64,000 nt of DNA, from the NCBI RefSeq assembly GCF_902652985.1, contig NC_047031.1:8680001-8744000 (forward strand), written 5' to 3'. The translations under genes and the position numbers were made by a program. The notes under the pieces were generated by a model that saw nothing but the letters and a program-made list of their open reading frames with translations, did not search any database and was not told the DNA's origin. This stretch comes from Pecten maximus (taxonomy: Eukaryota). Positions 2,588-50,985 of the stretch are shown here, piece after piece. How positions within the stretch are numbered: the first letter of the stretch is position 1; each line of letters starts with the position of its first letter.

Positions 2588-3763
2588 CTAAATTGAAAAT
2601 ATAATGCAAGTGTGGATTAATCATACAAATATCTAATTAGTTACTAGCAAGCAATAGTTGATTATTTGGATCGAAACAAACACATGTTTTCTCTTATCTC
2701 GTCATTTTGAATAGGGTTGGCATATGAAGGATAGCTATGTAAGAAAACTCTACCATAGCGATTCACACGAGAGGAATAATCTGCAGGCAAAGGGGACAAC
2801 GGCGCCTGCTCGTGTTTACATTTGTCATGTGTCAACATCGTATCAGCAAGCAACGAGAAAGTCAAAATCTAAAATGAGGACTTTAGTAAAATATAAATAT
2901 GTACCGAGCATAAGTCGCTTTTAACCAGCAATAATCCTATATAATTACCCGGTTATAAAATAAAACAAGCTAATCTTAAACAATAAGTTGATGACATATA
3001 TATATATGATTTATATTCACTGGGCATAAAAATATATTGACAGGCAAAGAAAAATATGTATATCATGTTGTCAAACTCAAAAACCGAAATAAATGGTCCT
3101 AACCACGTGATCATAGAAAACTTCCATTTCTATTCATTGTAACTTATTATGTGTTTTTGTGTAGAGTTGCAGCCACGTTAACTGTCACATTTCTAATTAT
3201 TATCGTCATCGACGATGGAAGCACAGGGGTTCGCAAATCCCTGTGATAAGAAGAAAAATGTGTTCTTCCGTCACCTTCGCCGTTCCAGCAAGAAAACACT
3301 TGTAAATTTCTGTCACAGATAAGGTCTGATACATCCGATCGTTTCAAATCCCCTGTTCGTTCAATCAACAAATCTGTATAAGTATTACTTCAAATTCTCC
3401 AGCACCGAGAGCGGATAGTCTTTAACTATGATTGGAATTCCAATGACAGTGATGACGTCATACAATGACGTTGTATGCAAACTTAGAATTTTTGAAAAAT
3501 GCGTATGATCTTTCGGAATAATTTAATTTTTGTTATGAACTTCAGATAAATTAAGAAAATAGATAGCTGGAAAGACATTTTACCAGAAATGTTTGTACTG
3601 AACAGAAAAATAAGAGTGCTTGTAGGATTGGAGTATTCAAATAATCAGGTGAAATATCCTACATACAAATTTGATAAAAACAAGTATTATCTTCATACTT
3701 TAAACCGTTGAACTTTTGTTTACAATATAAAACGGTAAAAAAAATTATATCATATTATCTTAC

Positions 3764-4855
3764 CTTTTATGCACGAAAATGAATCTTGAGATACCATGTA
3801 CCCCACGTCACATAAACATGTAAATCCATGACAAGCATTCGGGCGGCACCTGGACTTCGGTGGACACTGACTATGACTGGTACATGAGGTATAAACAGGG
3901 AGAAAAGGAGAGGTAGTTGTTGATGTTGATGTTGGTGTTGTTGTCGTTGTTGTTGGCGTTGTTGTGGTCGTGGTAGGCGTGGTTGTTGTCGTGGTAGGCG
4001 TGGTTGTCGTTGTGGTAGGCGTGGTTGTCGTTGTAGGCGTGGTTGTAGTTGTGGTAGGCGTGGTTGTGGTCGTGGTAGGCGTGGTTGTAGTTGTGGTAGG
4101 CGTGGTTGTGGTCGTGGTAGGCGTTGTTGTCGTTGTGGTAGGCGTGGTAGTTGTCGTGGTAGGCGTGGTTGTTGTCGTGGTAGGCGTGGTTGTAGTTGTG
4201 GTAGGCGTGGTTGTGGTCGTGGTAGGCGTTGTTGTCGTTGTGGTAGGCGTGGTAGTTGTCGTGGTAGGCGTTGTTGTCGTTGTGGTAGGCGTGGTAGTTG
4301 TGGTAGGCGTTGTTGTCGTTGTGGTAGGCGTGGTTGTCGTTGTGGTAGGCGTGGTTGTTGTCGTGGTAGGCGTTGTTGTCGTTGTGGTAGGCGTGGTTGT
4401 CGTCGTGGTAGGCGTGGTTGTCGTTGTAGTAGGCGTGGTGGTTGTCGTTGTAGGAGTGGTGGTTGTCGTTGTAGGAGTGGTTGTTGTCGTGGTAGGCGTG
4501 GTTGTTGTTGTGGTAGGCGTGGTTGTTGTTGTGGTAGGCGTGGTTGTCGTTGTGGTAGGCGTGGTTGTCGTTGTGGTAGGCGTGGTTGTCGTCGTGGTAG
4601 GCGTGGTTGTCGTTGTAGTAGGCGTGGTGGTTGTCGTTGTAGGAGTGGTTGTTGTCGTGGTAGGCGTGGTTGTCGTTGTGGTAGGCGTGGTTGTCGTTGT
4701 GGTAGGCGTTGTTGTTGTCGTTGTAGGCGTAGTTGTCGTTGTGGTAGGCGTGGTCGTCGTCGTGGTAGGCGTGGTTGTCGTTGTTGTTGGCGTAGTAGTT
4801 GTTGTAGGTGTAGTTGTGGTGGTAGTAGGCGTTGTAGTAGTCGTCGTAGGAGTTG
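3764..4855 (-). CDS. Gene A exon: (PTTTTTT)n mucin tract plus 7-Cys EGF-like module
   Basis: Acceptor tttcatag 4856-4857, donor gtaaga 3758-3763, 1092 nt, phase 1-1. Ends SPFLPVYTSCTSHSQCPPKSRCRPNACHGFTCLCDVGYMVSQDSFSCIK. This frame is absent from the ORF track. Confidence 0.9.
3930..4855 (-). repeat. Coding 21-bp tandem repeat, consensus ACG CCT ACC ACA ACG ACA ACC
   Basis: Roughly 44 copies visible, with occasional 18-bp units. Confidence 0.95.
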
Positions 4856-7673
4856 CTATGAAAGCAAATCAAACAAAATGTTTTCTACAGTTTAAGAGTG
4901 GTTTTATCAAAGCTGTCACCAAATATGATTAATATATGCAATGGGTAGCAATTGTATTAATATAACAAATTGTTGTACAGATTGCATATGTATATACAAA
5001 TATCAAAAAATGTTAAAGGTGACAGAAATATAAAAAAAAGATGTAACGCCTTGGATTGTCAATTACTATGTATTTATATACATACAAAAAAATGTATATA
5101 CATACGTTTGTATTGTCAATATGCAGGTTTAGATAACTACGTTTACATATTTAAAATATGTGCTTTATTTTTATAGAATTTGACACTTTTACTGCATACT
5201 GCTACAACAGAGAAAGCGTTATGAATTTCCAACTAGATAAAAAGAGAAAATATGAAAGTGCTTGAATTGATACCAACATATCAAACTGACGTGATTCATA
5301 TTTATATTTGACATTTTCCACATTACAAAATATTAGCCACGGTAGTTTATATGTCTGAAAGAGCATTTCCATATTCTTTGAAAAACCTTAATAATACAGA
5401 TATGACATTTTGAAATTCAATTGAAATTTTGAAGTTATTGAATAATTGACATTTGGCATCACCTCATTCAGTTTTGAAATTTATTTTCCAACCTATATCG
5501 TGTGCTTGGGAGCCTCCTATAATCGAAATATTATGCCTTCAGTATCACGGATGAGACTCAGAGGGATGAAACAGCTCTATGATGCAATTTAATTCATTTT
5601 TGCTCTACTGTATATATTAACTCTCGTTTGGTTTTGAAATGTGTCAATATCTATCTTTTGTACAATTCATTTGGATAATACACTTGATCAATCTTTATTA
5701 TCGTCACAAAGAAGTCATATAAAGATCGCACAACTAAACCTTTGGACTTTCTGACCGATGATGGATGGTAAACTGCCCCATTCAGTTGTTTCATATTTTA
5801 ATGGTCACTTAGTGGTGTCAATGCACAACTGGTTAGAAAAGAATGAGTAATAATACACCAAAACATTGCTAACCTTTAGAAGAGGAATTAGAATATAGAG
5901 CATAACGCAAACATCGTGATCTCCTTTCACATTTACCTCTTTAGATAATGTTTAAAAAGGGGGGGAAATAAAACAAACTAGAACAAAATGAAACATGAAA
6001 AAACAAATCAGTTTCCAGATCATATCATTCCTGGAGGTTTTGTTGCTAGTCATGTTTTAAGAGTGCTGCGTTGATTAGCCTATTATAACAGGATTGTTGT
6101 ACTGTAGTGAAAGATATATATATGATTGGTTTTAATGTTGCGGGAGATACACATGATTTGTTTATTCTATCAACGCTAAGCCCGGGAAGTCAGCGAGACG
6201 TTTTAATGACGAAATGAAAGAATGGCCAACAAACACATCAATACAATGAAATCCATTTGAATATGAAGTAATCTTTTGATGAAATTTTAATGCAGACATA
6301 TACATTTTTTTCTGCTGTTTCTATTTCAAAAAGATGTGAGGCATTGTCTAAAACCTAAAACAAAATGAACAAACAAGAATCAAATACAAACTATATGACT
6401 ATATATAGTTTGTTATGTGATTAACGTGTTTTATAATGACCTTGTAATGATAATCGAGATGAACATTAGTCATATAAACATGCTTTACGCCTACAGGTCT
6501 TTCGACTGTACTTGTCTTACAAAAGAAGAACCGACACCAACAACAGTTCCAATGGAACGCAAACAGTTTTTATTTGTTAAAAAAACATTTTTTGTTAGAA
6601 ATGTGTATTTTTTACAGAACAAAATTTTAAAAAACTGAATCTACATGGTGGTTCTATACAAAATCTCTTACAGAGAAAGATATGATGCAAATAAATTATA
6701 TAAAACGGCTCACACTAAAATCATAAATAAATAAAAACTAATGTAGATTCCCGTCGGAATAAACATCGATCTTATTCTTTCATCATAAAGCAAAACCAAT
6801 AATGAGATGGCAGTTCCCCGTCGACAACATGTGAATAACGTCACAGAGATAATACGATGACGTCACACCGACATCTTTATTATGACGCCATAAAGTGTAT
6901 CAGTTGGTTTTTTCCTACCGCATGAGTAAATTATCTTATCTCATAAAGCTCACGGGGCGATCCTTTGGTAGTTATTGATGGGATAACTCATTGCTACTAG
7001 GGTAGGGAAAGACTGTTGACATCTGCCTACTTAAAAAAGAGTAGCGTCATCATTTTATGTAGCGTAACCATGCCGTCAATTGATGACGTCATCAATTTCG
7101 ACATTGATGATGACACGAGGAAAAGGTTTCAAAACAGTTTGCAAATTGATGCTGTTTTGAAGTAAGCGAAACCAAATAATTCAAACATGGGTCCGTTCCG
7201 TGGACAGGGATATTTCAACCCTGGTGTAAGAGCATAAATGGTCAGCACGAGACTGAATGCTGATCATACAAACGCTTACACACGTCTCCATGTTAAAATT
7301 AACATGTCAAACCAACATTATGATGTTATGTATGGGAAACGCATAAGAACTTTATAATATGCAAAGGTTTCTATATTTAACCCCTATGAGTACATGGCAG
7401 AATGATGAGGGACAATGAAAGAAACAAGAATATTCCCCAGAACAATTCTTTTGAGCAAAATATATACTGAAGAAATCCTGCTCCCAACAACTTAAAAAAA
7501 AACTTGAGACAAATTCAATTTATTGCACTTGTGACTATAATTAAGCAATATCATTCAAACAACCAACAAGTATTTACCCATAAATCGGTATTGAAATTAA
7601 AAACATCAGCATGTAGATTCGAATAAGGAAATCTACTTGGGGGTAGTAACGATAGTTTTTTTATGTAACGTTA

Positions 7674-8117
7674 TAGAGGTTGAAGGGATGTGAAAAGTGT
7701 CATTTTCATTGTTTAATTTACGTTTGAAACCACTATCAGCATATTAGAGGTTGAATGGGTGTGGAGAGTGTCATTTTCATTGTTTTATTTTCGATTGAAA
7801 CCACCATCAGCATATTAGAGGTTGAAGGGGTGTGAAAAGTGTCATTTTTATTATTTTATTTTTCATTTGAAACCACTATCAGCATGATAGAGGTTGAAGG
7901 GGTGTGAAAAGTGTAATTTTCATTGTTTTATTTTCGTTTGAAACCACTATCAGCATGATAGAGGTTGGAGCAGTGTGAAAAGTGTAATTTTCATTGTTTT
8001 ATTTTCGTTTGAAACCACTATCAGCATGATAGAGGTTGGAGCAGTGTGAAAGGTGTAATTTTCATTGTTTTATTTCGTTTGAAACCACTATCAGCATGAT
8101 AGAGGTTTGAGGGGTGT
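7674..8117. repeat. ~71-bp minisatellite, ~6 copies
   Basis: Unit tagaggttgaaggggtgtgaaaagtgtcattttcattgttttattttcgtttgaaaccactatcagcatga starts at 7674, 7745, 7816, 7888, 7959, 8030, 8100. Confidence 0.95.
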
Positions 8118-8750
8118 ATCACGTTATACACAAGGTGTCCTGTAATCTAGCTATGACGCGATTACTCAGTAATAGATCGGTAAAACAGCCGACATTGATG
8201 TGTCTATGCAAACTCTAAAGTATCTATTTCAGAGAACTTACAAAATATTAAACATATCGGACCAATAACAAATTGCGCGCCAACCGTACTTTCCTTATAA
8301 CAAATATAGTTATACTGCATTTAACTTCAACTATGATTAAACGGAAGACTTTCAACGCGAAACGCGTTAAAATAATATTACCGCAAAGATATGTATTGTG
8401 CATTTATAATAGCTTACAACACTTTTGTTGCCTCTGTTCTAATGGTATATGGTGCATACAATATAAAGTCAATCTATTTATCGTGACATTAATCGTTACA
8501 AGCGATAAATATTATAAAAATATCGTTATAAACATATTTTTCAATAAAGACCCTGTAAGTTGTTATTGGTAATGAAACATAAATATTAACACAAAGGGTA
8601 GTAAAATCGGATAAGTCTTATATAGTATGTACATTAAAGAATAGTATATATGCCACGTCTGATAATTCATATTTAAATTATGGATGGTTAATTCACTCTT
8701 TGCATATACATGTATGCATGTATATATACATGTATATGCAAACCTGGTGC

Positions 8751-8756
8751 TTTATT
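8751..8756 (-). promoter_or_regulatory. Candidate polyadenylation signal for the membrane-form terminal exon
   Basis: First minus-strand AATAAA I found downstream of the stop at 9659-9661 (~0.9 kb). AT-rich context, so weak evidence. Confidence 0.3.
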
Positions 8757-9658
8757 AAATTGTATATGATTATTTTGTATAACTGGTTCAAATGTATAAA
8801 CTTTATAAAATAATGAAGATGATGATAACAAATGTACGCGGCAAACTTTTACATGTCTCGTTTCGATATGTTGCATGATACCTGTTTAACATATGTGATT
8901 TTAATTGCATCTACACAAATCTCTGTTTTCTCACTTTCTACATGCAAAGGTCAAAACAAAATATATTGATTGTAAGGGCATATAAGGAAACATCTGCTTC
9001 AGTTTTCAAACCACTCAGGGATTATTGCCCTTGAAGCATGACTACTCATATTCAATTTTGATAACTAAATCTATTTTCATTGCAATTATATCTGATTAAT
9101 CCAATATCCAACGATCATGATTTGCTTATCAAGATGTCATAGGAAAACGAAAGTGACGTTTGCAACAAACTTGTATGCAAATTCACTTTTAATGACACTT
9201 TCTACTTTCTAGGTAATTGATAAAACGCAGATTTGGCATAATACATGTATATTGATACTGTTTGGTACACTCCAAAAAGTCTAATATAACGATATTATAG
9301 ATGTAATTTATGGATATAGCAATGCATCTTAACTCATAATCAGAGGGGTTAACAGTATTGAAGACTGAACCACGTGACCACTAATGAAAACTATAAAACT
9401 ATGAGTAAAACTGATATACACTGTATACAGTTTTCAAAAAAAAAACAGAATATAAAATTGAAAAAGTAAAACATATTTACAGAAATCTCAAATGTTTGGT
9501 GACGACAAAGCAGGTATAGAACAAAAAGGAACTATTAAAATGAAAAGGGGTGTTTGCAGTTGCTATTTGAATTTGAGCATTTTCCTAGAAATCCGGGTAT
9601 TTTTTTTCTTTTTTTTTTAGATGTTTCGTTCTTGAACATATTCTTTCTCTTGGCACAT

Positions 9659-9926
9659 TCATCCTGTAGCTTGTTTCTCCCCGGAATTTCTCTCTTGTTC
9701 CTTGTCAATCTCTTCGTACATAACCTCGTCACCATTTAATGACATGACGGAGCCGTAGTAGGGACTGAATGATGAAAATGAGGAGCCCCACGTGCTATAA
9801 TCGTTAGTATATATAGGTGTGGTCAGACTGGGACGGGGGATTTTGAAATTGTTCAACGACTCATTGTCGGGTTTTACAGTGTTCTCGACCGGCTTCTGAG
9901 CTGGAGTTTCTGCATCTTTCGCTGCT
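9659..9926 (-). CDS. Terminal exon: cytoplasmic tail with Tyr motifs and stop
   Basis: Poly-T-cag acceptor at 9927-9928, phase 2 matching exon 11601-11700. (R)AAKDAETPAQKPVENTVKPDNESLNNFKIPRPSLTTPIYTNDYSTWGSSFSSFSPYYGSVMSLNGDEVMYEEIDKEQERNSGEKQATG*. Confidence 0.85.
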
Positions 9927-11600
9927 CTGAAAAAAAAAGTTATGTATAAGTATAAATATAAACCAATGACAATATGGTCATTAAATAGTCTTTTTCATTT
10001 AAAGATTGGGTATTCTTATCAAATCATATGATACCCTCCACGAAATTACCAAATGAACGTTAAAAATACGTATATAGTCATACGATCAGTGTTTATAGTG
10101 ATAATAAGAAAAGTCATAATTAAATGGATATTCCTTTGTTTGAGTAAGGTTTAGGTCTTCAAAATCTAACCAAGTAGTAAAGGTTATAATCTTTACATTT
10201 TTACGGCAGTTTTACTCCCGAGATAAACCAAAGTTCTTCGAGTATTAAGGTATGAATATTCTTAATTCGACCAAAAGTATCACTTATTTAACCGCAAAGA
10301 AAACAATTGTATACAGTACGCATTTTTTCCTGTTCATTTCGGTGTTTATTTCATTATTTGTAGGCACAAACACTCATATAATCATCGTTCGGACATAAAT
10401 TCCATCAATAGAAATTGTGTATGTTTCTGATGTCCGAACGAAGTAATACCCCCTTTAACTTTTCGCACTTAAATATTGTCAATATGTAGCAACGAGCAAT
10501 TAAATAAAGCAAAAATAGACTATCTAACGAAATTTATTGTATTTTTCGTTTTGCTTTGAAATAATACTCCGAAACTATTGTTCGGTCTAACAAGTCACTA
10601 ACTACCACAACTTTAACTGTTGTTACTTCCTAGTACAGACAAAACTAATAATGATAATAGACATCTAGATAAAACTTAATATAACTCACATTTTATGTGA
10701 AATATTCCATTGATAAAACTTAGCTCTATATTTGTTTAATTAGACAAGATAATGACAAAGCTCGCCAGCCCCATCAGGATCTAAACTAAACCTGATGTTG
10801 ATGATTTGCTAGCAATGGGATAGAACATGTACAAGTATTTTTTATTTATTTTTTTTATTTTCCTATGTTTATGATTACTCTATTGTTGTTATCAATGTAA
10901 TGATATTAACGTGAGTAAATGAAATATACAGGAACATTTTAAACTGAGATGTGCCTTTCGTTAACCAAGTTCACATGTTAAATTGGGTAAAAGTTGATAT
11001 CGCTACCATTGCCGTTATTCTAACTTATATGATGATGTATTCTTTCATTTTCAGTAACATACAACATTGAATTGTAAAACGTCCTCGAGGTTTGCCAAAA
11101 TAGGTATGCCATGTTTTAATTAATTTAAATAATGAAACGGCACAGAATATACACTGTACACACATGCTTTTGATGTTCTTTGAAATTCAAAATTGAAAAT
11201 GTTGAAATTAATTAAATTATAGAACTATTGCTAACCCCCTTCTCGATTTTGATATTTCGTTCGACCTATTTTAATATCTTCAGTTGCCTTCTAATTATAA
11301 ACCTTTTAGTCATTAGCATCATTGACGAGCCTTTGAAGAACAGTTGTATGATGCAATTGATAAATTCATTTTACTCTACTGTATCGCACTCTTAGTTTGT
11401 ATTAATGTTTATAAATTGTGTGTTTTTGTACTTCTTTACGACAAGTGAAAATATCTAATGGAAAATAAACAAAACACACCAGGTTTCTACGAACCAGGCA
11501 TCTGGCAAGGATATTAATCAACATTTTCAATTTTTGATATTGGCTGCATAAATATATTTTACCTATATACATTTAATGTCATTATTACAAAAAGGCTTAC

Positions 11601-11700
11601 CGCTGTTTCCTCCTTTTCTTCCTCCCACAGGTCAACATGACCAGACAAAGCATGTTTACAAGGAATACAAAGCCAGCCACTGAAGGAATAATGAATATTT
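11601..11700 (-). CDS. Transmembrane exon with basic stop-transfer segment
   Basis: Acceptor tctctttcag 11701-11702, donor gtaagc 11595-11600, phase 1 to 2. (E)IFIIPSVAGFVFLVNMLCLVMLTCGRKKRRKQR. Confidence 0.88.
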
Positions 11701-11963
11701 CTGAAAGAGAAAACAGTCCTTTATTTTATTTTCAACAACCATAATCCACACCTGTTGCACTGGGAAGGGAACTTAGTAAACGTGACTTATCTATTATAAT
11801 ACATACTTTGATCAATCTCTAGGTTATTCAACTTTCAATAAAGTTATTTTGTAGCGAGATAAATTTTATACAAAAAATGTAGTTACGCCCAAATCCTACA
11901 CATCTGATAAATGTTCTAAAATTAACATTGTACAAGTTATTTATAATTAATGGTATCACTTAC

Positions 11964-12026
11964 CAAGTCCTCCATTCTGCACAGATGATATATTTGATGC
12001 AGATTCACTTCCGGTTTCGTTTAGAG
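11964..12026 (-). CDS. Short extracellular juxtamembrane exon with two N-glycosylation sequons
   Basis: Acceptor ttttctttaaag 12027-12028, donor gtaagt 11958-11963, 63 nt, phase 1-1. xLNETGSESASNISSVQNGGL (NET, NIS). Confidence 0.75.
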
Positions 12027-12391
12027 CTTTAAAGAAAAAAAATGCATTCTTGTCAGAAATATAATACTTTCACATATACTCATTCTTAAAGTCCAATTAT
12101 GTTTGTTGGCATAACAAAGTTCCATTGGAAGTAAATAAACATGCGTGTTTTGCTAATATTTGCATAAACTTAGTCAATTATCTGTCTGAACAATTTTAAT
12201 ATCTGACACCTCTAGACATTTGATTTTCAAATCGTTACAGCTTGAAAGATATTCTCTATTGAAATAGTTTGTATGCTGAATCGACGAAGCATTCAAGCGT
12301 TTGTTTTTTAAAGCGGAAATGTTAATATTATAGGAATTATATATATATATATATATGGTATATTACATAACATCAGTAGAAACAGCATTAT

Positions 12392-12449
12392 CATATACTC
12401 TCATATTCTCCATATACTCTCATATTCTCCATATACTCTCATATTCTCT
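12392..12449. repeat. 19-bp tandem repeat x3
   Basis: catatactctcatattctc repeated three times. Confidence 0.85.
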
Positions 12450-15400
12450 ATTTTCGTGAAATCTGACAGAGTCATCACATATCATAGTATCTGCTAAAAG
12501 AGAAAATAATGTATATCGATCGAAGCATTATTAAATGTAAGTTGGTTATCGTTTTATAACGGATTTTTTTTAACGCATATTGGTTTATAATATTTCATAT
12601 TTTGGTATATCAATTCTAGTAAAATAACCTTTTTTGAAATGATGTAAAACTTTTGAATATGTCTTGAGGCTAAGACGCGATTTTTGAATTTCGCTAAAAC
12701 TTTCCATATTAGCCTAGTAGAAGCTCGTTCATCTGCAAAATTTCCCTGACTAGTTTCCTTATACTGAAGTGATAAGGAACCGCGTACATGTGTACGTAAA
12801 TAATGATATTATATATATTCCAAAGGATTGTTTTTTCGTGAAATGCTGTAGGGTCTTAACTCTCGCTATGATAAATTGTGCTATACATCACATGTATACA
12901 CAAGTTTTTTTCTGTATTTAGAAATACATGTACAATAAATGTATATAAATACCTCGAAAAAATTGTTACAATTTGAGAAGTAGAGCATTCATATTCCAAA
13001 TACTACTGAGAATATATGTACACATAGAACATTACTTCGAGAAGTTTATTACAGATATTTTTATGTCGTCACTTTCTATCATTATCTAAGTAAATAAGAG
13101 GGATATGTCTGCAAACTAAATGATATTTTTACCTGAAACATGGCAATTCAATTTTATAGTTTCTTAATATGAGACACCTTACCATTTATTTAGTATTAGC
13201 CTGACTATATATCATTTTATTTTGTTAACGATTATGTGTATGATACTTTGTTGTTCAAGAATATCTAAACCTTGACGTATTCCAAATTTTAAATGAATAA
13301 TCACCATGAGATTACTTCTAGTATAATCATGATTCACACGATACATTGTAACACAACGGTGGCCAATCTGATAGAATGAAGTGATATTCTAAAGTCGAAT
13401 TAAACTTTCTGCATTTTGGCTCCAACTCTGTCTAGTATTAAAAGTGAAAACTGTTTCTAAATATAACAAATATATTACTGCAGTCTTGATTCGGGTTTAG
13501 ATAATGTTGGACTTTAATAATTACGCATTTCAAATCACTTACATCAGTACGAAACCATATTACTAATATAAAACACTAGTGAATATTTTATGACTTCCAG
13601 AAACCCTGACAATTGAAACGAAATTTTGAAGTTGGCTTATAAAAACCCTAGAAATGATATGTCTGTAGATTAGTGTAACAATCATTGTTAGCACGCATAA
13701 CAATGTAATTAAACAACAATGAATTTTACATGCTAAACAATAAACTTAAGATAAATGTGCAGGTATTATAGGATATTAGTACAAAATGTTACTATAAATA
13801 GGTACAGAATATGGGTTAAAGTGTGATAACCTCATGCATCATTTTATGTCGATTAGATATAGAACAGCACGGAACGATAGGCAACAAGTTTTGTTAGTCG
13901 TGAAAACATATTACGTATCACGTGATTTCCTGTTTAGAAGTTGATGTCTAAATATACACATTATTATAATATTGAAAACATATCTTATTTGATAAATTTT
14001 CCCTTTTTAATTTAAATATGGGGCCAGTACATGTCCTTCTCGATATGTTATTTGTTTCGTAACATTTCTTGATTCTTCCTCTAACATCACTGCGTGGGGT
14101 TATTTCCATATGAAGAAAATATATGTAAATTTACCTCGGGCGTATATTTCCACATTTGCAGTACAGACCAATATATCACTATAATTGTGGCAAATCACAC
14201 GAGAATAGTCAGAGAAGTATATACAAATGCAGTGTCATTATCAAAGTAGCGAAAAAAAACCAATTGTATATCTTTTTAATATTGCATTAGTTTCATATAA
14301 TTTCATATCTTAATATAAAAAAAAAATTACTAAAACATTCAATTTTAACCTCTGCCACTATTCATTATACGTACTAAATCCGGAAAATGATTTGCAGTCA
14401 ATTTATTAATATTTAAGACGGATCAACATCATTAAACAATCACTCATCAGGTAGAGACGGTTTGTGTCAAGTTAACTGTAACCTCCACAAAATCCATGCG
14501 GTTAGGTGCGGCAACATGTACCACTAACACAGGGCGTGTTAAAAATATCGTGGTTGATCAGTCTGTGACAGGTCACGTGACTGGGTGTGCGTGAAATGAA
14601 TATGCATGTTTTGCATCAAGCAACATGTTGGGTGTACTTTGGTGCAAATGTATAATTAATATTTTTATTTATAAGGAAATATGTTAATACAGTTTACATG
14701 AATGGGTCTTCGTCACGCTGTGGACCACAAATTTTAATCGTCATAATTATCACAGGTTCATCTTTTAACAGGATGTACCCTTTTTTATAAAGGGTCGCAA
14801 GGTGTGAATTAACCAACGAAAACATCAGTGAAATACACAATCGAACAAACGTTTTTGAGATGAGTTTATCAAATATAGTTATCCTGATAATGTCACCCAA
14901 ATATTACTGCTTTTTGACAATAAAGCAAAGTAAACTAGGTTGAGATTCTAAAAGAATCTGCAATAATAAATACAGACATTGGTTTTTTTCGGAGGTGATG
15001 AAGTCGACCCATTTTCTCTGTTGTCTGGAGAGAACACATCGTGGAGTCACATAGCGACATATAAAGCAGCGTGCGCATGTGCATTAGCTAATACGATGAC
15101 GTCATTATATGGAACATCAACTTACCTTTCATTTGAAGTTTTTTATTCGTTACAGAAACGATCCGAAATTCTTTGTAGGAATGATGCTTTCCCTTAGCTG
15201 TTGTTTTAGTTGTTGTAGCTTCATTTATGCAAATTTGTTTTATCTTCCGACATTTGAAATTCGCTATTTTATTTCACCAAAAACAAAACCTTTTCTAAGG
15301 TTCACGTGATGAACGGATACTCGTATACATTTATCTAGACACATACACTATTCGGATATATGGACCATATTCGGATCTTTGAGTATTGTAATCATATATG

Positions 15401-17075
15401 TGTATATAGGTAAACAGTTCACAATCTTCGTGTACTCTAGTCAAATATATCCCATACAAAAATAATGAGTCTTTAACACAAAATCAACCTGTTATCAAGT
15501 GAAATCGTCCTGAAATCGATCGTGACGTCATATTAATAACAATTACGTTACGTCATGAATTAAACATGGCGAAACAATATGTCTGCCTCCGTTTGAACCA
15601 CCCTACACACTTTGACATAAAACTTGTCAAAATGTCATATCCTTCGTTATGTGATAAAAAGTATCTTAAATTTGTTTTCTTTTTCATATGAGACTTTCTG
15701 AAACTCGCCAGGCATACATTTTTTTTTTAAATCTAGAACTTTTTCATAAAATCACATCTCCTTCAAGATCTTATGCAATTTTATTCTATGGTCATGAAAT
15801 AAAACAAGCTCTAATACATGACTGTTTCAAATTCTTTATCGGATTGACTTTCCTCAAATACTAAACAATTATTTTATGGCATGCTGTAAACATATAAAAA
15901 CCTTTTTCTATAGCATTTGGACACACAAAAATAAAATTATCCTATTTTGATAGAATGAATACCAAAATTTCCTTAAAATATGCCATTTACTTGTCAAAAT
16001 ATCAAATATATAGGCTATATTCTTATATACGGTAACGTAAAAGTTTGAATGTAAGAAAAAGCGTATGTTACACGAGAGCCAGTAGTCATTTTAGGGTTCA
16101 CATATTAGACAGCAGGGAGGATGTCAGTGCGGGGTTCACACACGAGACAGCAAGGGTTGGTCAATGAGGGGTCCACACATTTGATTAGATAGCAAGCTAA
16201 GGGAAATGACATTTCGGAGTGCACACCTGAAACAGGGGGTTAATAATTTGGGGTTTACACATGAGAACGCAGGGAGGGGTAAGACTGGGGATGACACATT
16301 AGACAGCAGGGGTGGTGTCTTTGTTTACAAGATTTCCAAAGAGTTGTTTTATTCGCCACGTAAATCACGAAAAATCGAACGGTTACCATGTGTGTGTAGG
16401 TATTTCACAATAGGTTGACTTCGACGAAAAACACTAATCATGCTTCTCACCTGAATGGTTATATTCAATTAAAATCACTGCCTGAACTAATGTTAATACT
16501 CTTATCTCTTTATCTTTAAGTTAAGAGATTCAATACATTGTTAATTATTTACAATCAGTAGACTAAGGATAAGAAAAAAAGTATATATACTACAAATCAC
16601 TTACATTTCGTAAATACATAATACTTCGCGAGCTTGCCTTTTCAGACACATTCGCGATTACCTGATTTCGCGAACATTGATCTGGATATAGCTTTAAATT
16701 CGCGCATGATGAGCTATTAGAGACATGAACTCCGCAAGGCTACTATTTCGGTATGAAATAGCTTGGTCGCCATCCAAATTTGTTATATAATTTTCGTAAA
16801 AATAATCGCGAATAATTTGAATTCGCGAATAACTCTTCTCTCGCATTAACACGAATATAAATGTAACGCGAAATAAAGTGATTTACATGAGTATTACAGA
16901 CATTTATCTTTGGTTTCTAAAACAGAAATACTTGATATTACAAAGGGAAACAGAACGGTTCCTTCGACTTCGACTATGAAGGGAAAACTGTTATAGAGGT
17001 CATGCTGGGAAAGATCTCTACTTCGTTAATAGAAACTAGTAGTAAACACACAAAACAAATCAAGATAAAACTTAC

Positions 17076-17894
17076 TTGTAGTTGTCGGAGTTGTGGTCGT
17101 AGTTGTTGGAGTGGTAGTTGTAGTTGTTGGTGTAGTTGTGGTGGTTGGCGTGGTAGTTGTGGTGGTTGGCGTGGTGGTTGTGGTTGTAGGAGTGGTGGTC
17201 GTAGTTGTAGGAGTAGTGGTTGTAGTTGTAGGAGTGGTAGTTGTAGTTGTTGGTGTAGTTGTGGTGGTTGGCGTGGTGGTTGTGGTTGTAGGCGTGGTGG
17301 TTGTGGTTGTAGGAGTGGTGGTTGTAGTTGTAGGAGTGGTAGTTGTAGTTGTTGGAGTGGTCGTTGTAGTTGTTGGAGTGGTAGTTGTGGTTGTTGGAGT
17401 GGTAGTTGTAGTTGTTGGTGTAGTTGTGGTGGTTGGCGTGGTAGTTGTGGTTGTTGGAGTGGTGGTCGTAGTTGTAGGAGTGGTAGTTGTGGTTGTTGGA
17501 GTGGTAGTTGTTGTAGTTGGAGTGGTGGTTGTAGTTGTTGGTGTAGTTGTGGTGGTGGTTGGCGTGGTGGTTGTAGTTGTAGGAGTGGTGGTTGTAGTTG
17601 TAGGAGTGGTGGTTGTAGTTGTAGGAGTGGTTGTTGTAGTTGTTGGTGTAGTTGTGGTGGTGGTTGGCGTGGTGGTTGTAGTTGTAGGAGTGGTAGTTGT
17701 AGTTGTTGGTGTAGTTGTGGTGGTGGTTCGTGTGGTTGTCGTTGTTGTAGGAGTAGTAGTTGTTGTTGTAGGTGTGGTAGTTGTAGTTGTTGGTGTTGTG
17801 GTTGTTGTTGGTGTTGTGGTTGTACTTGATGTTGTAGTTGTCGTCGTTGGTAAAAGACCAGGAGGTATTTCAATGTCCGTTCCGTTACACGTAT
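17076..17894 (-). CDS. Gene A exon: CNG linker plus (PTTTTTT)n mucin tract (unit 1)
   Basis: Acceptor ttaaag 17895-17896 after a pyrimidine tract, donor gtaagt 17070-17075, 819 nt, phase 1-1, frame of ORF 17026..17928. Confidence 0.9.
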
Positions 17895-18131
17895 CTTTAA
17901 TCCAGAGAGAAAAAGAATTGGTTAACATTGATGAGTCAATATAGAGTTTGCTACTTTTGTTTCAAAGAGAAAGTCATTATAGTATTGTATGTATGTCATT
18001 TCTTATTTGAATATGGAGTTGAATCAAACAAAACAGGAACATAAGTCAATTGTTTCATCTGAGACTTACCGAAAATAGATATTTGTCCAAATTAAACCTT
18101 TACTAATGGAATAGATGATATTATGACTTAC

Positions 18132-18431
18132 GGATGGAATAAGTGATGTTATGACACTGCAGGGGACTAATAGGATCCAACCAAAATTCCTCTTCGGAAA
18201 TTTCCCTGTATGGGGCCTCACACACACAGCGGCCATTTTTACACACTGACGGATACAAACATTCTCGTATTTCTCCGCATGCTTCTCCCATGTAAGCTAC
18301 ATCCGGCAATTTACACCTGCCATCATCCGTCCGCAGGAACACCTCAAAACACTCGCATGTATCCCGACACAGGGAGAAAGGTGACATGCATTTTGTTGTA
18401 TACCAATCACAAGTCTCGCCCATACGCTTCG
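18132..18431 (-). CDS. Gene A exon: paired EB/EGF-like modules, 12 Cys (unit 1)
   Basis: Acceptor gttacag 18432-18433, donor gtaagt 18126-18131, 300 nt, phase 1-1. AKRMGETCDWYTTKCMSPFSLC...EEEFWLDPISPLQCHNITYSI. Confidence 0.92.
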
Positions 18432-18613
18432 CTGTAACAGATATAGAGAGATCAATGGTTGACATTCAGTTAGCACAGTGAAATCTCTGTTGTTTTATGT
18501 TGATTAAGTTGCTTTATTGACATTAAGTTATAACTGTTGCTTTGTTTCACTACGGCCTTTGTAACTGAAAAACAGGATATCTGCTTATTACTATTAAACG
18601 ATGCCTTGCCTCT

Positions 18614-19018
18614 GTAACGTTTTCGGCATCAACGCCCCTGCGACCTACGTGGTATGAACTTATCCGGACTTTCCTTGATTTGACCAAGATTTGCCCAGTT
18701 GTTTTTTGGGTTATTTTTTATTGATTTGACAAAGATTCAACTGGAATTCACCCAGATTGACCTAGATTTGACCGAGATGAACCTGGACTTTACCCGGATT
18801 TACCATGATTTGACCCAAGCTTTCCGTGATTTCAACCAGATATACCTAGACTTGGCCCATATTGCCCAATATTTGACCAAGATTTTTCTTTATTTGGTTC
18901 AGATTGACCATGACTTGACCAAAATTAACTGGACTTTACCTGGCTTTCCTTGATTTTACCCAAATTGTCCTTGATTTGAACCAGATTTACCTGGACGATG
19001 ACGCAGAAAACGGTTACC
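18614..19018. mobile_element. Putative MITE with internal degenerate ~21-bp repeats
   Basis: Ends gtaacgttttcggcatca / gatgacgcagaaaacggttac are imperfect inverted repeats. Interior consists of gatttgacccagatttacctg-like units. Confidence 0.45.
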
Positions 19019-21196: not shown

Positions 21197-21340
21197 CTGC
21201 TAAACATCTGTCTCTGTCATCACTAGCAACGTAACCCTCTATACATCGGCACGTGTACCCGTCGCACGCACTGGGTTGGCATTGGGCGTGGTCTGGACAC
21301 TCGGAATGGGACGAACATTTTTTATATATCTTTAAAGTGC
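21197..21340 (-). CDS. Gene A coding exon 2: first 7-Cys EGF-like module
   Basis: Acceptor ttccag 21341-21342, donor gtatgt 21191-21196, 144 nt, phase 1-1. (C)TLKIYKKCSSHSECPDHAQCQPSACDGYTCRCIEGYVASDDRDRCLA; same Cys spacing as the modules at 3764 and 451. Not in the ORF track. Confidence 0.9.
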
Positions 21341-22437
21341 CTGGAATTGTAACAAAACACCAGAGTAAGTATCACGTCAATATCATTGGTTAGCAGTAAT
21401 TAGATATGTTTGAGACAGAATCCAGTATCACTGATAACTGTTTGATACTAGAACACTGAATTCTAGTATCTAGCTATGCGATATTTTAATATTTATTTTA
21501 TTTTATTATTTTTCACATAAATGTATTTTATTTTTATTTTTAAACTGAGTTTTATTTGTCAATTTACATTTAATAATATATATATACAACATATAAATGA
21601 TAATAAAAAAAGGAATTAGAAGCAAGTGTCAATAATGATTGCCTCTAGAATAATTACTCTTTCGTACTTTATAGAGCAAACACATAAGCCAATATATGTT
21701 ACGAGAATATTATATTTCTCAGCAACTATAGAATACATGTTCAGAAGATATCTCGCTTAATGCGGAGTTTTTTAAGCTAAATGGAAACTTGGAAATGTGA
21801 ACTACAGAAACAAACACAGCATACCGCAGAAGAATAAGACTCAGTATACCGAAGAGTAATTTCAATTTTTCAATTTTTGTTTTATTCTATATGCATCAGC
21901 ATATAGGATTATAATATACATACAAATTATAACATATTCAATTTTACAGGATGTTATAGCCTTTTGAGACCTCGACGATACCAGTCATACTGTCGTTGCT
22001 TTGGCAAATGCCATTAAGAAATGTTATGCAAAAAATGCCACCTGGTCTCGCCTTCTCTTTTCATATTTTATTTTTGCTTTTTTATTTTTCTTCTCCTTCT
22101 TTTGAAACTTGTCATTAAAATACAGGTATATGCAAATCCCATTAAAAGAGTAACATAAATTTAAATAAATCTAAAATTCGTGTTTCATACAGCTCATTAA
22201 TTATTATGTCATCGTGTTATTAAACTAATTGCCAATCACCGTGCTTTGATCAACGACGTAATACAATGACTCTGTCAACAGAGACTTGTCACTATCCTAC
22301 CGGAAGTAGGCTGTTTTTGACGTAGAGTCGACGTTGATAAATATTAACTGTATGGTAGGGGCGTATAAAAGTATCAATTAATCAATCTGGCTCTTACACA
22401 ACGTCAACACAAATACATGTACAGAATCTAACATGGG

Positions 22438-22630
22438 TTGAAATGCTCTACAAATAAAACAAGTTACAATAGTTTACATATTTAAAAAGCTATCCACATC
22501 TCAGAATTTAAAACAATTTGAAATGCTCTACACATAAAATTAACTACAATAGTTTACATATTTAAAAAGCTATCCACATCTCAGAATTTAAAACAATTTG
22601 AAATGCTCTACACATAACATTAACTACAAT
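22438..22630. repeat. 80-bp tandem repeat, ~2.4 copies
   Basis: ttgaaatgctctac... starts at 22438, 22518 and 22598. Confidence 0.9.
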
Positions 22631-23808
22631 ATATTCATGTATGATTCACAAATCGTGATTTAAATCCTAATATGGCAATCACCAGGCTTTGTTGACTTGA
22701 TAAACATAAATAAAAACGTGTGATGCATTCTCAAACAACAATCAGGATTAACGTCAGAAATCATATTGTTAAAATAACACCAACAACAAAACGAGAAGGC
22801 AGAAAATGTCAACATAAAACTAAACTCTAAACGTGATTGTGAGTTTCTTACATACGATTAAATAACCATGCAAAATTTTTGAACTGAATTAAATAATATA
22901 CGGAGATGTTTGATGTGCAAAGAGAACTCAATTAAGTAACCGAAATCTTACAACTCAAAATCGGAAAAACGAGAGAATGTATAAGTAAACTATAGATTTA
23001 TAAGACACTAAAAAAAATTTAAAAAAAAAGAAACATACAAAAATAGGAACATGTGTTCCGGAATGATAAGCGTCCTCTGTATTATCGATTTTGATAAAGT
23101 GTGGATTAAATCAAGATGATGCCATGATTTCAAAACAAGAACAATGGCAGTGACATTTGAACCATCATATATGTGGTAAGCGAACACGCCGCATGTCACA
23201 ACAGAAATACATAATCCCCGTTGAGATAATGGTTTTGACTATTTACGATTATATTTATTGCCCTACATCTCTAATGAAAGATGTCGGAGCACATTGATAT
23301 TGATAAACAATATCTTAACAGGTCTGTGTAATACTAAAAATAATCCAACTTGTCTAAAATTTGCAGATTCTATATGATGCATGTAATTTATAAGAAGGAG
23401 GTATTATAACGGAATGGTTTTATGTCCTCCACAGACATAGGGAAACTGTCAACCAAACCTGAACAATCAGTTGTTCTCTTCTTACGTCATGCAGTAAGAT
23501 AAATAACTATTTATGTAGGTATATGTTTTTGATTTGGAGAAACATTCTTGATCTTTATTGGTTATAATACTGTTAGAAAAAACACAGAAAATATATCAAA
23601 AACCTTCATCAACCAGCGATTACATCAAACAATTATCCATAGGCATATGAATGCGCATGCCCACTAAAGAAAAATTACATGAAACCGCGCAGTTGTTTTA
23701 TGTCAAATACAGTAGTTTGAAATGAACATCAACGATGAAAACAAAATCATTACGAAATATGCTTATGTAGAGGTGTAAGACGACAATGCTTTATTGCATG
23801 TAATTTTA

Positions 23809-24280
23809 CAGGGTTCATACGGATTATGTCAAACCAAATTCAAGGCCTTTGGATGGCTTTTTCGCTGTCTTTATTAAATACCCAAGGCCCGTTTTACCTG
23901 TCGTCCAAGTCAGCTTGAGAGGAACTATAAGATCAAAACATCAATTCAAAACTGTCCACTTGATCCAAATACAACTTGATATGGTTATTATTCTTATCAA
24001 ACATTCATAAAAACAGTAACGTCAGTAGGGGAGGCGGTAAAGACAAAATTGAATCAAACTGATCAGTGGCCAGGGTTTCACTTATCCTTATAAAACCTTA
24101 ATATGCAAGTTTTCAAGGCTGTAGACCATTTTTCAAGGCTTTTCAAAGCCCAGAATGAAATTCAAGGCTTTTCAAGGCCCAATGTGTTGTTCAAGGCTTT
24201 TCAAGGCCCAAGGTGGACTTCAAGGCTTTTTAAAGCTCCGAATGAAATTCAAGGCTTTCTCAAGGCCCGTGCTAACCCTG
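23809..24280. mobile_element. Non-autonomous DNA transposon/MITE with TTCAAGGC subterminal repeats
   Basis: Termini cagggttcatacgg ... ccgtgctaaccctg are imperfect inverted repeats; many (t)tcaaggct(tt) motifs at 24110-24268. Confidence 0.6.
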
Positions 24281-24853
24281 TTTAAGCTGGAGGTAGTGAC
24301 ACACAGTTACTGCGATAAAGACACAGTCAACACAAGGTAATCATATCTATCCACTAAGTTAGATATCTGAAGTAGGAAGCAAACTATAGTATACTTATAT
24401 ATCAAGTAGGCAGTGTTTCGAAAAGACAGATGTTTTAATGTACTTGATAAAATTTCGGATATTTCATATTTGTCGTCTTAATGTTCCCCCTAACTTTAGA
24501 TAAATGATCCGTTAACATGGCCATGACTCAAGATATTTTAATACGCACTACTTTCCGCCGTATACAAACAAACCTTGAGCGCGTGTGGCTGAAGGGATTA
24601 AACTGATTCATAACAACAGTCCGTCATGCCATGATTTAACACAGAAATCACCTGTTAATGACAATTATTACCTAAATTCCACAAACGTAACACGCTGGTG
24701 TGAGACCATCTATTATAACGAAATTTACTGTATAGTGTTATACTTAACAATGGGCTAAGATAATAGCGTACGTATTCAATGTATGTATATATATATACCT
24801 GTACAACAATAGTGATGATATCTTACAGCAATAGTGACTATATTAAAATATAC

Positions 24854-25393
24854 TTTATCACTAGCAAATAAAGGAAGGAAAGATTTGTTATCAAATTTCA
24901 TTCTTTATCACTAGCAAATGGACGAAGGAAAGATTTGTTATTAAATTTCATTCTTTATCACTTCCAAGTAAAAGAAGGAAACATTTGTTATCAAATTTCA
25001 TTCTTTATCACTAGCAAATAAAGGAAGGAAAAATTTGTTATCATTTCATTCTTTATCACTAGCAAATAAAGGAAGGAAAAATTTGTTATCAAATTTCATT
25101 CTTTATCACTAGCAAATGAACGAAGGAAAGATTTGTTATCAAATTTCATTTTTTGTCACTAGCAAATGAACGAAGGAAAGATTTGTTATCAAATTTCATT
25201 TTTTATCACTAGCAAATGAACGAAGGAAAGATTTGTTATCAAATTTCATTTTTTATCACTAGCAAATGGACGAAGGAAAAATTTGTTATTAAATTTCATT
25301 CTTAATCACTAGCAAATAAACAAAGTAAAAATTTGTTATCAAATTTCACTTTTTATCACTAGCAAATGAATAAAGGAAAGATTTGTTTTCAAA
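24854..25393. repeat. 50-bp minisatellite, ~11 copies
   Basis: Head-to-tail unit tttatcactagcaaatgaacgaaggaaagatttgttatcaaatttcattc, no unique spacers. Confidence 0.95.
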
Positions 25394-26290
25394 TACATTC
25401 ATTTTCAACTTATTGAATTAACAATATATAATTGTTATTGATCTTTAAGACGGCTATAAGAATTATTATGTGGAAAGTAAATGTATGTGTTGACAGTACG
25501 AACTATTTTGTAAAATGAATGATTGATTATGTAAGAGTGAGTGTCTTGTCCTTTATGTACTGTATATACTATGTTATCCAATCGGAATGAAGTTAAAATT
25601 GAATTGAATATCCCATACAGATAATGACAATATAAAAGTGGATTATTTTGCTCTCTATGAACGTCTATTATAATGTTGTATAATGTATTTGTTAAATAAC
25701 ATCTTAAAAATTGATATATATTTTCAGTTTCAAAATATTTTATCGTCAACACAAGAAGTATAATAACAGGGTTTGGTTTTTTTTTTACATAGAATATCAT
25801 AAAGATTTGGTGTTGGCAAAAGGGATTGGACAACAGGCTCAGCCTATATTAGTCCTTTCCTATAAAATTGATATATATAATTTTTCGTTGTATAAATAAT
25901 CCTAGACGAAAACACTGCCGTTTTTTTTGACATGATAGTTAACGGTATGCAGACCTTCGTTTTATATCGACTCTAAATCATACCTGACCTGAATATGACA
26001 AATTTGTCAAAATCAAACGTACTTAACATATAAATGCCCATGTTTATGTAAGTTACTCAACACAGCCTTCATGTAAACCTGTACTACAACATAATAATAA
26101 TGAGGTAATCAACTGCCTGCTTTAGCAAATTTTGACCCATTGTTTTTCTTTTGTTATATGCTATTGTTCTTTACACAAATCAACACCAATCATTTATATG
26201 TTTCTCTCTCCAAATTTTCAAATCAGCAGCATTATTCCTATTGTATTATTAAACTTTGAATTAGTTGCATTTTTCAGAGAGTGAGATAGA

Positions 26291-26486
26291 GTTTGTTTTG
26301 TTTTTGTTTAACGTCCTATGTTAATAGGGTCATTTAAGGACGTGCCAGGTTTTGGAGGTGGAGGAAAGCCGGAGTACCCGGAGAAAAACCACCGGCCTAC
26401 GGTCAGTATCCTGGCAACTGCCCCACGTAGGTTTCGAACTTGCAACCCAGTGGTGGAGGGCTAGTGTTAAAGTGTCGGTACACCTT
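26291..26486 (-). mobile_element. tRNA-derived V-SINE-like element (5' truncated)
   Basis: Reverse complement of the family at 37983 and 42827: B box, TTTTCTCCGGGTACTCCGGCTTTCCTCCAC core, (AAAC)n tail. Confidence 0.85.
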
Positions 26487-27655
26487 TAAGATAAAGAGAT
26501 TGGAGTTTTCTCAATAACGAAACAGCTGTGAGATGTATAGGTTTATTCATTATTCAAGAGATAATGTACTGAATTAAATTCAAATTAATCAACTGAGTAT
26601 CTTTGTACAAGTATTTTAAAAATTTCAAATGTCCTTCAAAGCATTAAAATGTAAATGCTTTAAAATTTGATTAATTCACCAAATTCATGAACGAGAAAAG
26701 ATAAGTTTGAAAGATGTGACAACATCGTACTGAAACAATCTCTGGTATTAAGATGAAGCATATATTATCATATAATTCATATATAAATTCAATTAAATGT
26801 CAAATGAATTAATTACAAAACATTTGGCAAAGATGAAATCTTTTATAAGGAATTTAATTTCAAAGTATAATTGGAACAATGTTTATACATGTACTAATAT
26901 ATAATGAGTAATGATAGTGATATATATACTGGAAAATAATATTATTTTCGTGGGGTTTTATTTTAGCTTTTAATGAATTAAGAAACTTTTGGAGCCTGAC
27001 ATAGAATTTCAATGTTACTGCATTTCGAGGATAATTGATTCTTCAGGAAGCTAATATGTACTGCCTACAAAAGTATAAACTACGAAATTGGAAGTCCCAC
27101 GAAAATGTATGATACGACAGTATAAACTACGAAATTGGAGTCCCACGAAAATGTATGATATGGCAGTATAAAACTACTGATTAATGGACATATTCATCAA
27201 ATGTCACTCTTTCCATTTAAAAAATGAAATAAACAAGGCAAACCAAAGTGAATAAGGAATGATAAAGAAAATTTACCATCTGATAAAGTTAATCTTAAAA
27301 TGTAGTAGGCATGCAAGTTACATTTATTCTAAATTCACAAATAATATAGAAGAAAACTTAATCAAACGTAAATTATTTACAGAAAAAATGAAGTGATAAT
27401 AATCATCATAATACATTTAACTTATCAACTCCTTATATTGATCAAGTATATCCGACATTAATGATCAAATTAAGAGAATTTGCGCATTAGCGTATAATTA
27501 GTACATTTGTATTAATACATATTCTGACAAACAAACAAATAAAAATATTATTAATGATTTAACCTCAACTCCATCAATAGGTAAAGACAATAAAATGTTG
27601 ACAGACAGTATATATACAAATGTTTATATAATATATGTATATATATAATACTTAC

Positions 27656-27716
27656 ATTGAACAGGTAAAGCGATAACCACCAAGACAACGAGAGCCCATA
27701 ATACATCTCTGGGCAT
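27656..27716 (-). CDS. Gene A first coding exon: signal peptide
   Basis: cttcctcacag|ATG CCC AGA...CAA T|gtaag gives MPRDVLWALVVLVVIALPVQ; 61 nt, phase 1, joins exon 21340 to give ...VQC-TLK, a plausible cleavage site. Confidence 0.8.
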
Positions 27717-50485: not shown

Positions 50486-50985
50486 NNNNNNNNNNNNNNN
50501 NNNNNNNNNNNNNNNNNNNNNNNNNNNNNNNNNNNNNNNNNNNNNNNNNNNNNNNNNNNNNNNNNNNNNNNNNNNNNNNNNNNNNNNNNNNNNNNNNNNN
50601 NNNNNNNNNNNNNNNNNNNNNNNNNNNNNNNNNNNNNNNNNNNNNNNNNNNNNNNNNNNNNNNNNNNNNNNNNNNNNNNNNNNNNNNNNNNNNNNNNNNN
50701 NNNNNNNNNNNNNNNNNNNNNNNNNNNNNNNNNNNNNNNNNNNNNNNNNNNNNNNNNNNNNNNNNNNNNNNNNNNNNNNNNNNNNNNNNNNNNNNNNNNN
50801 NNNNNNNNNNNNNNNNNNNNNNNNNNNNNNNNNNNNNNNNNNNNNNNNNNNNNNNNNNNNNNNNNNNNNNNNNNNNNNNNNNNNNNNNNNNNNNNNNNNN
50901 NNNNNNNNNNNNNNNNNNNNNNNNNNNNNNNNNNNNNNNNNNNNNNNNNNNNNNNNNNNNNNNNNNNNNNNNNNNNNNNNNNNNN
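50486..50985. other. Assembly gap (500 N)
   Basis: N run; the round length suggests a fixed-size scaffolding gap. Confidence 0.99.

Follow-up and report, generated by a model that had tools for sequence, protein, structure and literature searches.

Alternative choice of terminal exons or polyadenylation sites accounts for the secreted and membrane forms of IgM and for the calcitonin/CGRP pair, and conjoined read-through transcripts between tandem genes on the same strand are usually rare. Among membrane proteins, CD164, endomucin and MUC1 are type I molecules in which a stalk of Pro/Thr repeats is followed by one transmembrane (TM) segment and a short tail with tyrosine motifs. The locus compared here with these systems lies in a 64,000-nt stretch of Pecten maximus contig NC_047031.1 (here C17, positions 8680001-8744000), hereafter the window. 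All features discussed are on its minus strand, and positions beyond its left edge are given as negative numbers or as contig coordinates. An earlier note on this DNA had read three short exons between 12026 and 9659 as a TM-and-tail cassette nested within an intron (donor 17076, acceptor 4855) of one long mucin gene, and had proposed a switch between a short receptor and a long mucin. The results presented below show that these three exons are the constitutive 3' end of a first gene (gene 1), and that the exons from 4855 leftwards are those of a conserved six-unit paralogue with a TM segment and a tail of its own (gene 2).

Structure and transcripts of gene 1

Seven minus-strand exons were assigned to gene 1 (27716-27656, 21340-21197, 18431-18132, 17894-17076, 12026-11964, 11700-11601 and 9926-9659), with AG/GT borders at all seven and phases 0/1/1/1/1/1/2. 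When joined, they resulted in a closed coding sequence (CDS) of 1755 nt, free of internal stops and encoding 584 aa; 239 of these are Thr and 23 Cys, and the product has five sites for N-glycosylation. A putative signal peptide, an EGF-like domain, an EB module, a stalk of PTTTTTT heptads, a TM segment and a tail follow one another in this order. The joined CDS was computed for its length and stops, and homology searches were performed with single exons.

Transcript evidence was collected for window positions 11141-17140 from one run of each of four studies (X1, X3, X7 and X11), based on Logan contigs rather than raw reads. Such contigs drop rare forms, and do not allow expression levels, transcript ends or rare forms to be judged. 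The assignment of the runs as RNA is an automatic guess, backed by exon-centred depth and by joints with GT..AG ends. The joint 12026/17076 was present in RNA-like contigs of X3 and X1, and the joint 11700/11964 in those of X3, X7 and X1, both with GT..AG ends; moreover, the overhang before 11601 in X7 and X1 was the exact complement of 9897-9926, the start of exon 9926-9659. A 2023-nt contig from X3 carried 31 nt of the stalk array, skipped 5049 nt (CT..AC ends) to 12026-11964 and a further 263 nt to 11700-11601, and continued for 1829 nt beyond 11601. Depth in X3 fell on 11541-11740, 11941-12140 and the end of the array, the intron being represented by a few low-depth or repeat-derived contigs, and X7 gave the same picture of exons, array end and a few contigs of that kind. 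The intron was also covered in X1, at lower depth, so that this run resembles deep RNA that includes pre-mRNA; throughout the intron the X1 contigs matched the assembly, and this speaks against misassembly. Since the joints were found in three studies, an mRNA exists in which stalk, linker, TM and tail follow one another, a single mRNA thus linking the Pro/Thr stalk to the TM and tail exons. The short type I receptor mRNA of gene 1 is real, and the cassette 12026-9659 makes up the normal last three exons of the gene. On these points the earlier note was right: the exon borders it had given were all confirmed by their AG/GT flanks, and the splice from 17076 to 12026 that it had predicted, closing a 1755-nt CDS for a type I receptor, was recovered in RNA-like contigs of X3 and X1.

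At 15646-15684, a short element drew alignments of numerous unrelated contigs from each of the four runs, with loose ends on both sides; it probably represents part of a dispersed repeat within the intron. Two loose ends near the donor were set aside. The one found in X3 at 17081 was absent from the 94 kb examined (the window plus 30 kb to its left) and was taken as belonging to another mucin gene, and the 10-letter loose end of X1 at 17076 was an internal unit of the array rather than a new junction.

The 1829 nt found beyond 11601 correspond to the 268-nt tail exon plus approximately 1561 nt, so the 3' untranslated region (3'UTR) of gene 1 would pass the AATAAA at 8756 and reach about 8100. 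It would therefore span at least about 1.56 kb (8098-9658) and enter a 71-bp tandem repeat (6.3 copies, window positions 7673-8117), each copy of which has an AATAAA on the minus strand. A repeat of this kind would break a k-mer assembly, which could explain why the contig stops near 8100, and the real polyadenylation site or sites of gene 1 may lie within it rather than at the AATAAA at 8756.

The first exon (27656-27716) is predicted to carry the start codon and a signal peptide (20 aa plus 1 nt, ending in phase 1). It encodes MPRDVLWALVVLVVIALPVQ, with the character of a textbook hydrophobic leader, has a fitting phase and the donor GTAAGT, and was the sole strong signal-peptide-like phase-1 exon upstream of 21340. 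The second exon (21197-21340) encodes a 7-Cys EGF-like domain without the Thr-rich lead-in, and its matches to Pfam EGF/EB families were all below the cut-offs. The third (18132-18431) is the 12-Cys EB-module exon of unit 1; its score with Pfam EB (PF01683; 28.8 bits for 18429-18133) was above the gathering cut-off of 24.3, while the EB module of unit 2, 43% identical to that of unit 1, was below it (19.4 bits). The CNG motif and 31 PTTTTTT heptads are encoded by the fourth exon (17076-17894), whose donor at 17076 reads ...ACTACAA/GTAAGT and whose last 20 nt are unique within the 94 kb. The fifth (11964-12026, phase 1-1) encodes a juxtamembrane linker with two N-x-S/T sites, and the sixth (11601-11700, phase 1-2) a hydrophobic TM helix followed by the basic stop-transfer sequence RKKRRKQ.

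The last exon (9659-9926) encodes an 88-aa cytoplasmic tail (tail A), with the motifs FKIPRP and YGSV...YEEI, followed by a TGA stop. Tail A is single-copy, a search of the scallop's own genome having found no second copy. Comparison of tail A with a set of 5.8 billion proteins yielded no candidate of permitted length, a result that carries no information. A canonical immunoreceptor tyrosine-based activation motif (ITAM) has the form YxxL/I, 6-12 residues, YxxL/I, and a single YEEI matches the optimum for Src-family SH2 domains. In tail A, YGSV and YEEI are separated by nine residues and the first motif ends in Val; as read from the sequence, the tail is ITAM-like rather than an ITAM. With this organisation, the gene 1 product would be expected in the plasma membrane, where a heavily O-glycosylated stalk would hold out one EGF-EB head, and its tail could signal via tyrosine phosphorylation at YEEI.

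Gene 2 and the bivalve receptor family

The three-exon unit that the earlier note had described at 2587/1460/820 was found there, and the next one begins at 156. Within the window, the first recognisable exon of gene 2 (3764-4855, phase 1-1, with a conserved acceptor) encodes 41 PTTTTTT heptads and a 7-Cys domain. It is followed by the EB-module exon of unit 2 (2291-2587, 82% identical to Argopecten), the CNG exon (1395-1460, 66 nt), the Thr-rich plus 7-Cys exon (451-820, 370 nt, frame-breaking) and the EB-module exon of unit 3 (1-156), which is cut by the window edge. In order to follow the series further, the 30 kb to the left of the edge were searched with exon translations (loci L003-L005). 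From 4855 leftwards, the exons extend 17 kb beyond the edge and take in six EB units; EB exons were located by translated search at 2585, 151, -2287, -4630 and -7709, interspersed with 7-Cys and CNG exons. After the EB series come a long Gly/Ser-rich exon, a TM exon (TM-B, -11448 to -11531; C17 about 8668469-8668552) and an exon encoding a 190-aa tail (tail B, C17 about 8667250-8667910). TM-B is 39% identical to the cassette TM exon 11700-11601, and tail B has two IPRP motifs and ends in ...NHTYEEI. Tails A and B align over IPRP...WG...PY...YEEI (pairwise E = 0.003). Since the distal part has its own homologous TM segment and IPRP/YEEI tail, it is not a TM-less mucin.

The PTTTTTT heptad is common to both stalk arrays (31 copies in 17076-17892 and 41 in 3764-4853), and their codon use differs: Pro is encoded mostly by CCA/CCT in the first array, with much ACT, and by CCT in the second, with much ACG. 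Judging from these codons, the period of the stalk is kept within the species at the protein but not at the DNA level. In the Argopecten orthologue of the second array (L007:7890-8530) the repeat is a PTTTTT hexad, in contrast to the heptad of Pecten maximus.

A comparison of the unit-1 EB exon with 1.84 billion representative proteins gave 40 matches. Two scallop proteins, P0001 (Argopecten irradians, 1544 aa, GCA_041381155.1) and P0005 (Mizuhopecten yessoensis KP79_PYT23123, 1172 aa), are orthologues of gene 2 and colinear with it up to the tail; they have EB units u3-u6, TM-B and the Gly/Ser-rich stalk in common with it, and YEEI and two IPRP motifs occur in their tails as well. Unit u2 sits just upstream of the P0001 model, and exon identities range from 60 to 85%. 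As each model begins within the gene and has no signal peptide, neither fixes its 5' end. Searches with P0001, whole and with residues 560-960, matched Argopecten, Mizuhopecten and Pinctada proteins only, with no model from the window's own genome among the matches. In a maximum likelihood tree of 30 EB domains, from which the 12 domains of P0012 were omitted as distant, units u2-u6 of gene 2 grouped in a single clade (support 81/91), in which every unit was paired with its orthologue from Argopecten; the gene 1 unit fell outside this clade.

The Argopecten locus (L007) also contains a tail-A exon (81% identical) about 5 kb upstream of the Thr/7-Cys exon, so the arrangement predates the split of these genera; the rest of Argopecten gene 1 lies beyond L007. 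These results go against two parts of the earlier note, which had taken the distal exons as the remainder of the same mucin and the long form as a mucin with different anchoring. The distal part reads best as a six-unit paralogue, modelled separately in two other scallop genera, and the sequence left of the window, where the note had suggested looking for the C-terminus of the long form, holds TM-B and tail B. Its question of whether orthologues keep the cassette was answered for the tail-A exon, the part of Argopecten gene 1 contained in L007.

In the annotation of Argopecten L007:3147-8719, the Thr/7-Cys exon is called a 287-aa gene and the unit-2 exons are unannotated. The start of that model (10 aa, 115 nt after the tail A stop) was rejected as a first exon of gene 2: it is not a signal peptide, it is not conserved in Pecten maximus, and it was considered an ab initio artefact. 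Some 21 kb beyond the left edge of the window (L005), EGF-like matches occur where Argopecten has an EGF-repeat gene downstream of the pair (L007:32051-37017, with teneurin/Jagged-type EGF matches), and the position of this neighbour suggests conserved synteny. Elsewhere in the window, N runs at 50486-50985 and 56281-56456 represent assembly gaps or masked stretches.

Bivalve relatives with EB/EGF heads and mucin stalks resemble gene 1 in having a signal peptide, 7-Cys, EB and CNG parts, a Ser/Thr-rich stalk, a TM segment and a basic stop-transfer sequence. Full-length proteins with one or two units, including signal peptide, stalk, TM segment and IPRP tail, are represented by P0003, P0007 and P0039, and P0025 and P0026 have a like layout with a short tail lacking IPRP. 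The number of units varies from 1 to 6, and P0007 has an additional LDL-receptor class A module. The cytoplasmic motif (F)KIPRP...Y...W is found in P0003, P0007, P0039 and a gene in the more distant genome GCA_021869535.1 (locus L009), while YEEI was limited, among the relatives examined, to the scallop tails and that of L009. The L009 gene has two units and ends in a tail-A-like exon (FKIPRP...YEEIDKK), and a single uninterrupted exon encodes its CNG, Thr-rich and 7-Cys parts; the annotation of L009:25944-27858 calls the linker-TM-tail cassette a separate gene of 144 aa. P0002 and P0006 were discarded as short DNA or metagenome contigs without gene context. A literature search returned nothing on an EB/EGF mucin-stalk family, and no published function was found. 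Gene 1 is a one-unit member of an uncharacterised family of bivalve type I receptors; a tandem pair of mucin-stalk receptors is a known kind of object, the family itself being uncharacterised.

Two frame disruptions were detected in gene 2 of this assembly. Exon 820-451 measures 370 nt, while the other exons measured in the repeat units are multiples of three, and the frame of its Thr-rich part differs from that of its 7-Cys part; use of an acceptor at 600, matching in position the start of the 7-Cys exon of gene 1, would yield an in-frame exon of 150 nt. In the 7-Cys domain of unit 3, a 1-nt insertion at C17 about 8678518 (CGTCCCGAAT vs. CGACCTAAT in Argopecten), outside any long homopolymer, leads to a stop. 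The Argopecten irradians orthologue, in contrast, is intact and in frame at both sites. The remaining gene 2 exons, about 20, are all open, with 60-85% protein identity to Argopecten. Gene 2 may be decaying in this species or individual.

The 17076 donor and the interval 4856-9658

The 17076 donor is in phase with both acceptors, 12026 and 4855. Whether followed by CT (12026) or by CA (4855), the base it carries over gives a Thr codon, and the PTTTTTT array is continuous across a 17076-4855 junction. This junction was not seen among the listed joints and loose ends of the four runs' contigs over 11141-17140, and no competing branch at the 17076 donor was seen in the X3 junction contig, which runs 31 nt into the array. 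Thus, of the two junctions on which the proposed isoform switch depended, the one producing the short receptor was observed and the one producing the long form was not, and what lies beyond the latter is not the TM-less mucin that had been expected.

A single clearly alignable piece was found in the interval 4856-9658, a single-copy non-coding block at 6628-6705 with 77% identity over 78 nt to Argopecten L007:5754-5831. No RNA structure signal was detected in the block, and a search of 3000-19000 against Rfam gave no match. A Kozak-like ATG with a stop codon directly behind it occurs in the block of both species, and that of Pecten maximus also has a TATATAA. The block could serve gene 2 as a promoter, as an element of the 5'UTR or as one acting in splicing. 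The candidates for a 5' exon were 6256-6211 (MDFIVLMCLLAILSF, followed by GTCATT), 6053/6023-5975 (...MIWKLICFFMFHFVLV, followed by GTTTTA) and Argopecten 6745-6841 (followed by GTTAGT). The last two overlap a weak colinear match (E = 0.07) and are located 1.12 and 1.05 kb from the acceptor, respectively. The upstream part of gene 1 (21341-29000), in which its putative signal-peptide exon lies, showed no DNA similarity to 4856-9658 or 12027-17075.

The best explanation of these data, to which we give somewhat better than an even chance, is that the locus contains two head-to-tail paralogues and that any 17076-4855 product is minor. Each part has a TM segment and a tail of its own, and orthologues were found. 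The argument for two genes derives from the full family architecture in each part, the separate clade formed by the units of gene 2, the common occurrence of tandem paralogues and the lack of an X3 branch. Under the family layout, a signal peptide would precede at least one unit (7-Cys EGF-like, 12-Cys EB, CNG), followed by a Ser/Thr-rich stalk, a TM segment and an IPRP tail. Gene 1 would then be complete in itself, with its seven exons from 27716 to 9659 and 584 aa, and gene 2, from 4855 leftwards, would comprise six units with their own TM segment and IPRP/YEEI tail. The latter would normally be fed by its own, unrecognised 5' exon, for which the best region would be 6.7-5.9 kb, including the block 6705-6628 and the weak signal-peptide-like open reading frame (ORF) 6053/6023-5975. 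Rather than reflecting a regulated switch, any 17076-4855 product would be a conjoined transcript of minor abundance, arising by read-through.

Several observations weigh against two independent genes, and most of them speak for an amended switch, which we regard as possible yet doubtful: one promoter and one signal peptide would serve both parts via alternative terminal cassettes. The usual 17076-12026 splice would give the short receptor, ending after 9659, and skipping of the cassette and its polyadenylation site would allow the 17076-4855 splice, giving a seven-unit receptor with TM-B and tail B, truncated in unit 3 in this haplotype. A convincing signal-peptide exon was found neither in 4856-9658 nor in the orthologous Argopecten interval, the 5' candidates being T-rich ORFs with poor donors and no clear homology. 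Exon 4855-3764 is of the internal type (Thr-rich plus 7-Cys), found elsewhere in the family always after a CNG/Thr exon, and its acceptor flank is conserved in Argopecten, where the rest of the intron is not. Gene 2 has a conserved ORF, intact in Argopecten, so a signal peptide must come from somewhere, and the retention of the tail-A exon upstream in Argopecten and the in-phase, continuous array agree with a shared transcript. Moreover, contig ends in X1 follow the k-1 = 30 overlap rule and its unspliced contig starts with 30 array letters, but its spliced junction contig carries 29. Under de Bruijn logic, 29 letters at k=31 imply a competitor path starting with C plus a non-T after 17076, and exon 4855-3764 starts with CA; this hints weakly at a third path leaving the donor, and a cryptic acceptor or an alignment quirk would account for the count equally well. 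On the other side, the junction is absent from the contigs of the four runs and the donor shows no X3 branch. The exons of this locus are all phase 1-1, so the fit of the frame says little, and the units of gene 2 form a separate clade with their own TM segment and tail, as expected for a duplicated gene. Two frame disruptions lie downstream in this assembly, and a low-level junction would equally fit the chimeras produced by ordinary read-through of tandem genes. The broader proposition that the six-unit paralogue lost its signal-peptide exon across scallops, both genes being one transcription unit in which the 17076 donor chooses, seems unlikely.

The two lesions, together with the very poor donor of the best signal-peptide-like ORF, could also be taken as signs that gene 2 is a 5'-truncated or disabled copy becoming a pseudogene, and that only gene 1 makes protein: exon 820-451 is out of frame, the unit-3 insertion is not explained by a long homopolymer, and Argopecten is intact at both sites. 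We consider this improbable, given that the other exons are open and conserved, that one lesion is bypassed with the acceptor at 600 and that the other could stem from an error of assembly or be confined to one allele. Very improbable indeed is a separate nested gene, unrelated to the EB exons, with the cassette read from a start of its own in 12027-17075. Nothing spoke for it apart from the caveat of the earlier note about its manual search, and it is contradicted by RNA contigs that join 17076 directly to 12026. The earlier note had named an independent first exon in 12027-17075 as evidence for a separate gene; none was seen expressed there in the RNA contigs, X3, X7 and X11 yielding short low-depth or repeat-derived contigs only, and no signal-peptide-like phase-1 exon with a good donor was found in this stretch.

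The analysis provides a gene model, supported by transcripts, for one member of a bivalve receptor family that is uncharacterised; the public models retrieved for its scallop relatives (in the L009 genome, Argopecten and Mizuhopecten) are fragmentary. A further lesson is that what appears as a nested cassette in one window can be the ordinary end of a gene followed by a paralogue. If cassette skipping did occur, and abundantly, two paralogues would share a promoter and a signal peptide via alternative terminal cassettes, and a single promoter would drive receptors that differ in their cytoplasmic tails and carry either one EB head or seven.

Comparison with known systems

The likeness to IgM and calcitonin/CGRP depends on use of the 17076-4855 junction, in which case one donor would pick between a proximal terminal cassette with its polyadenylation site and distal exons. 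In contrast to those systems, the proximal choice alone has been shown here, both products would be membrane proteins, and the distal part is the whole body of a paralogous gene. A conjoined transcript would resemble those of other tandem genes in running from a donor upstream of the terminal exons of gene 1 to the first internal acceptor of gene 2. Unlike the usual cases, the junction would keep the frame and join two similar mucin arrays, so that the chimera could be translated sensibly. As for the protein, gene 1 shares with CD164, endomucin and MUC1 the type I plan of stalk, TM segment and tyrosine-containing tail, with no homology detected; it differs from these vertebrate sialomucins and mucins in lacking a SEA domain and in bearing a head composed of an EGF-like domain and an EB module.

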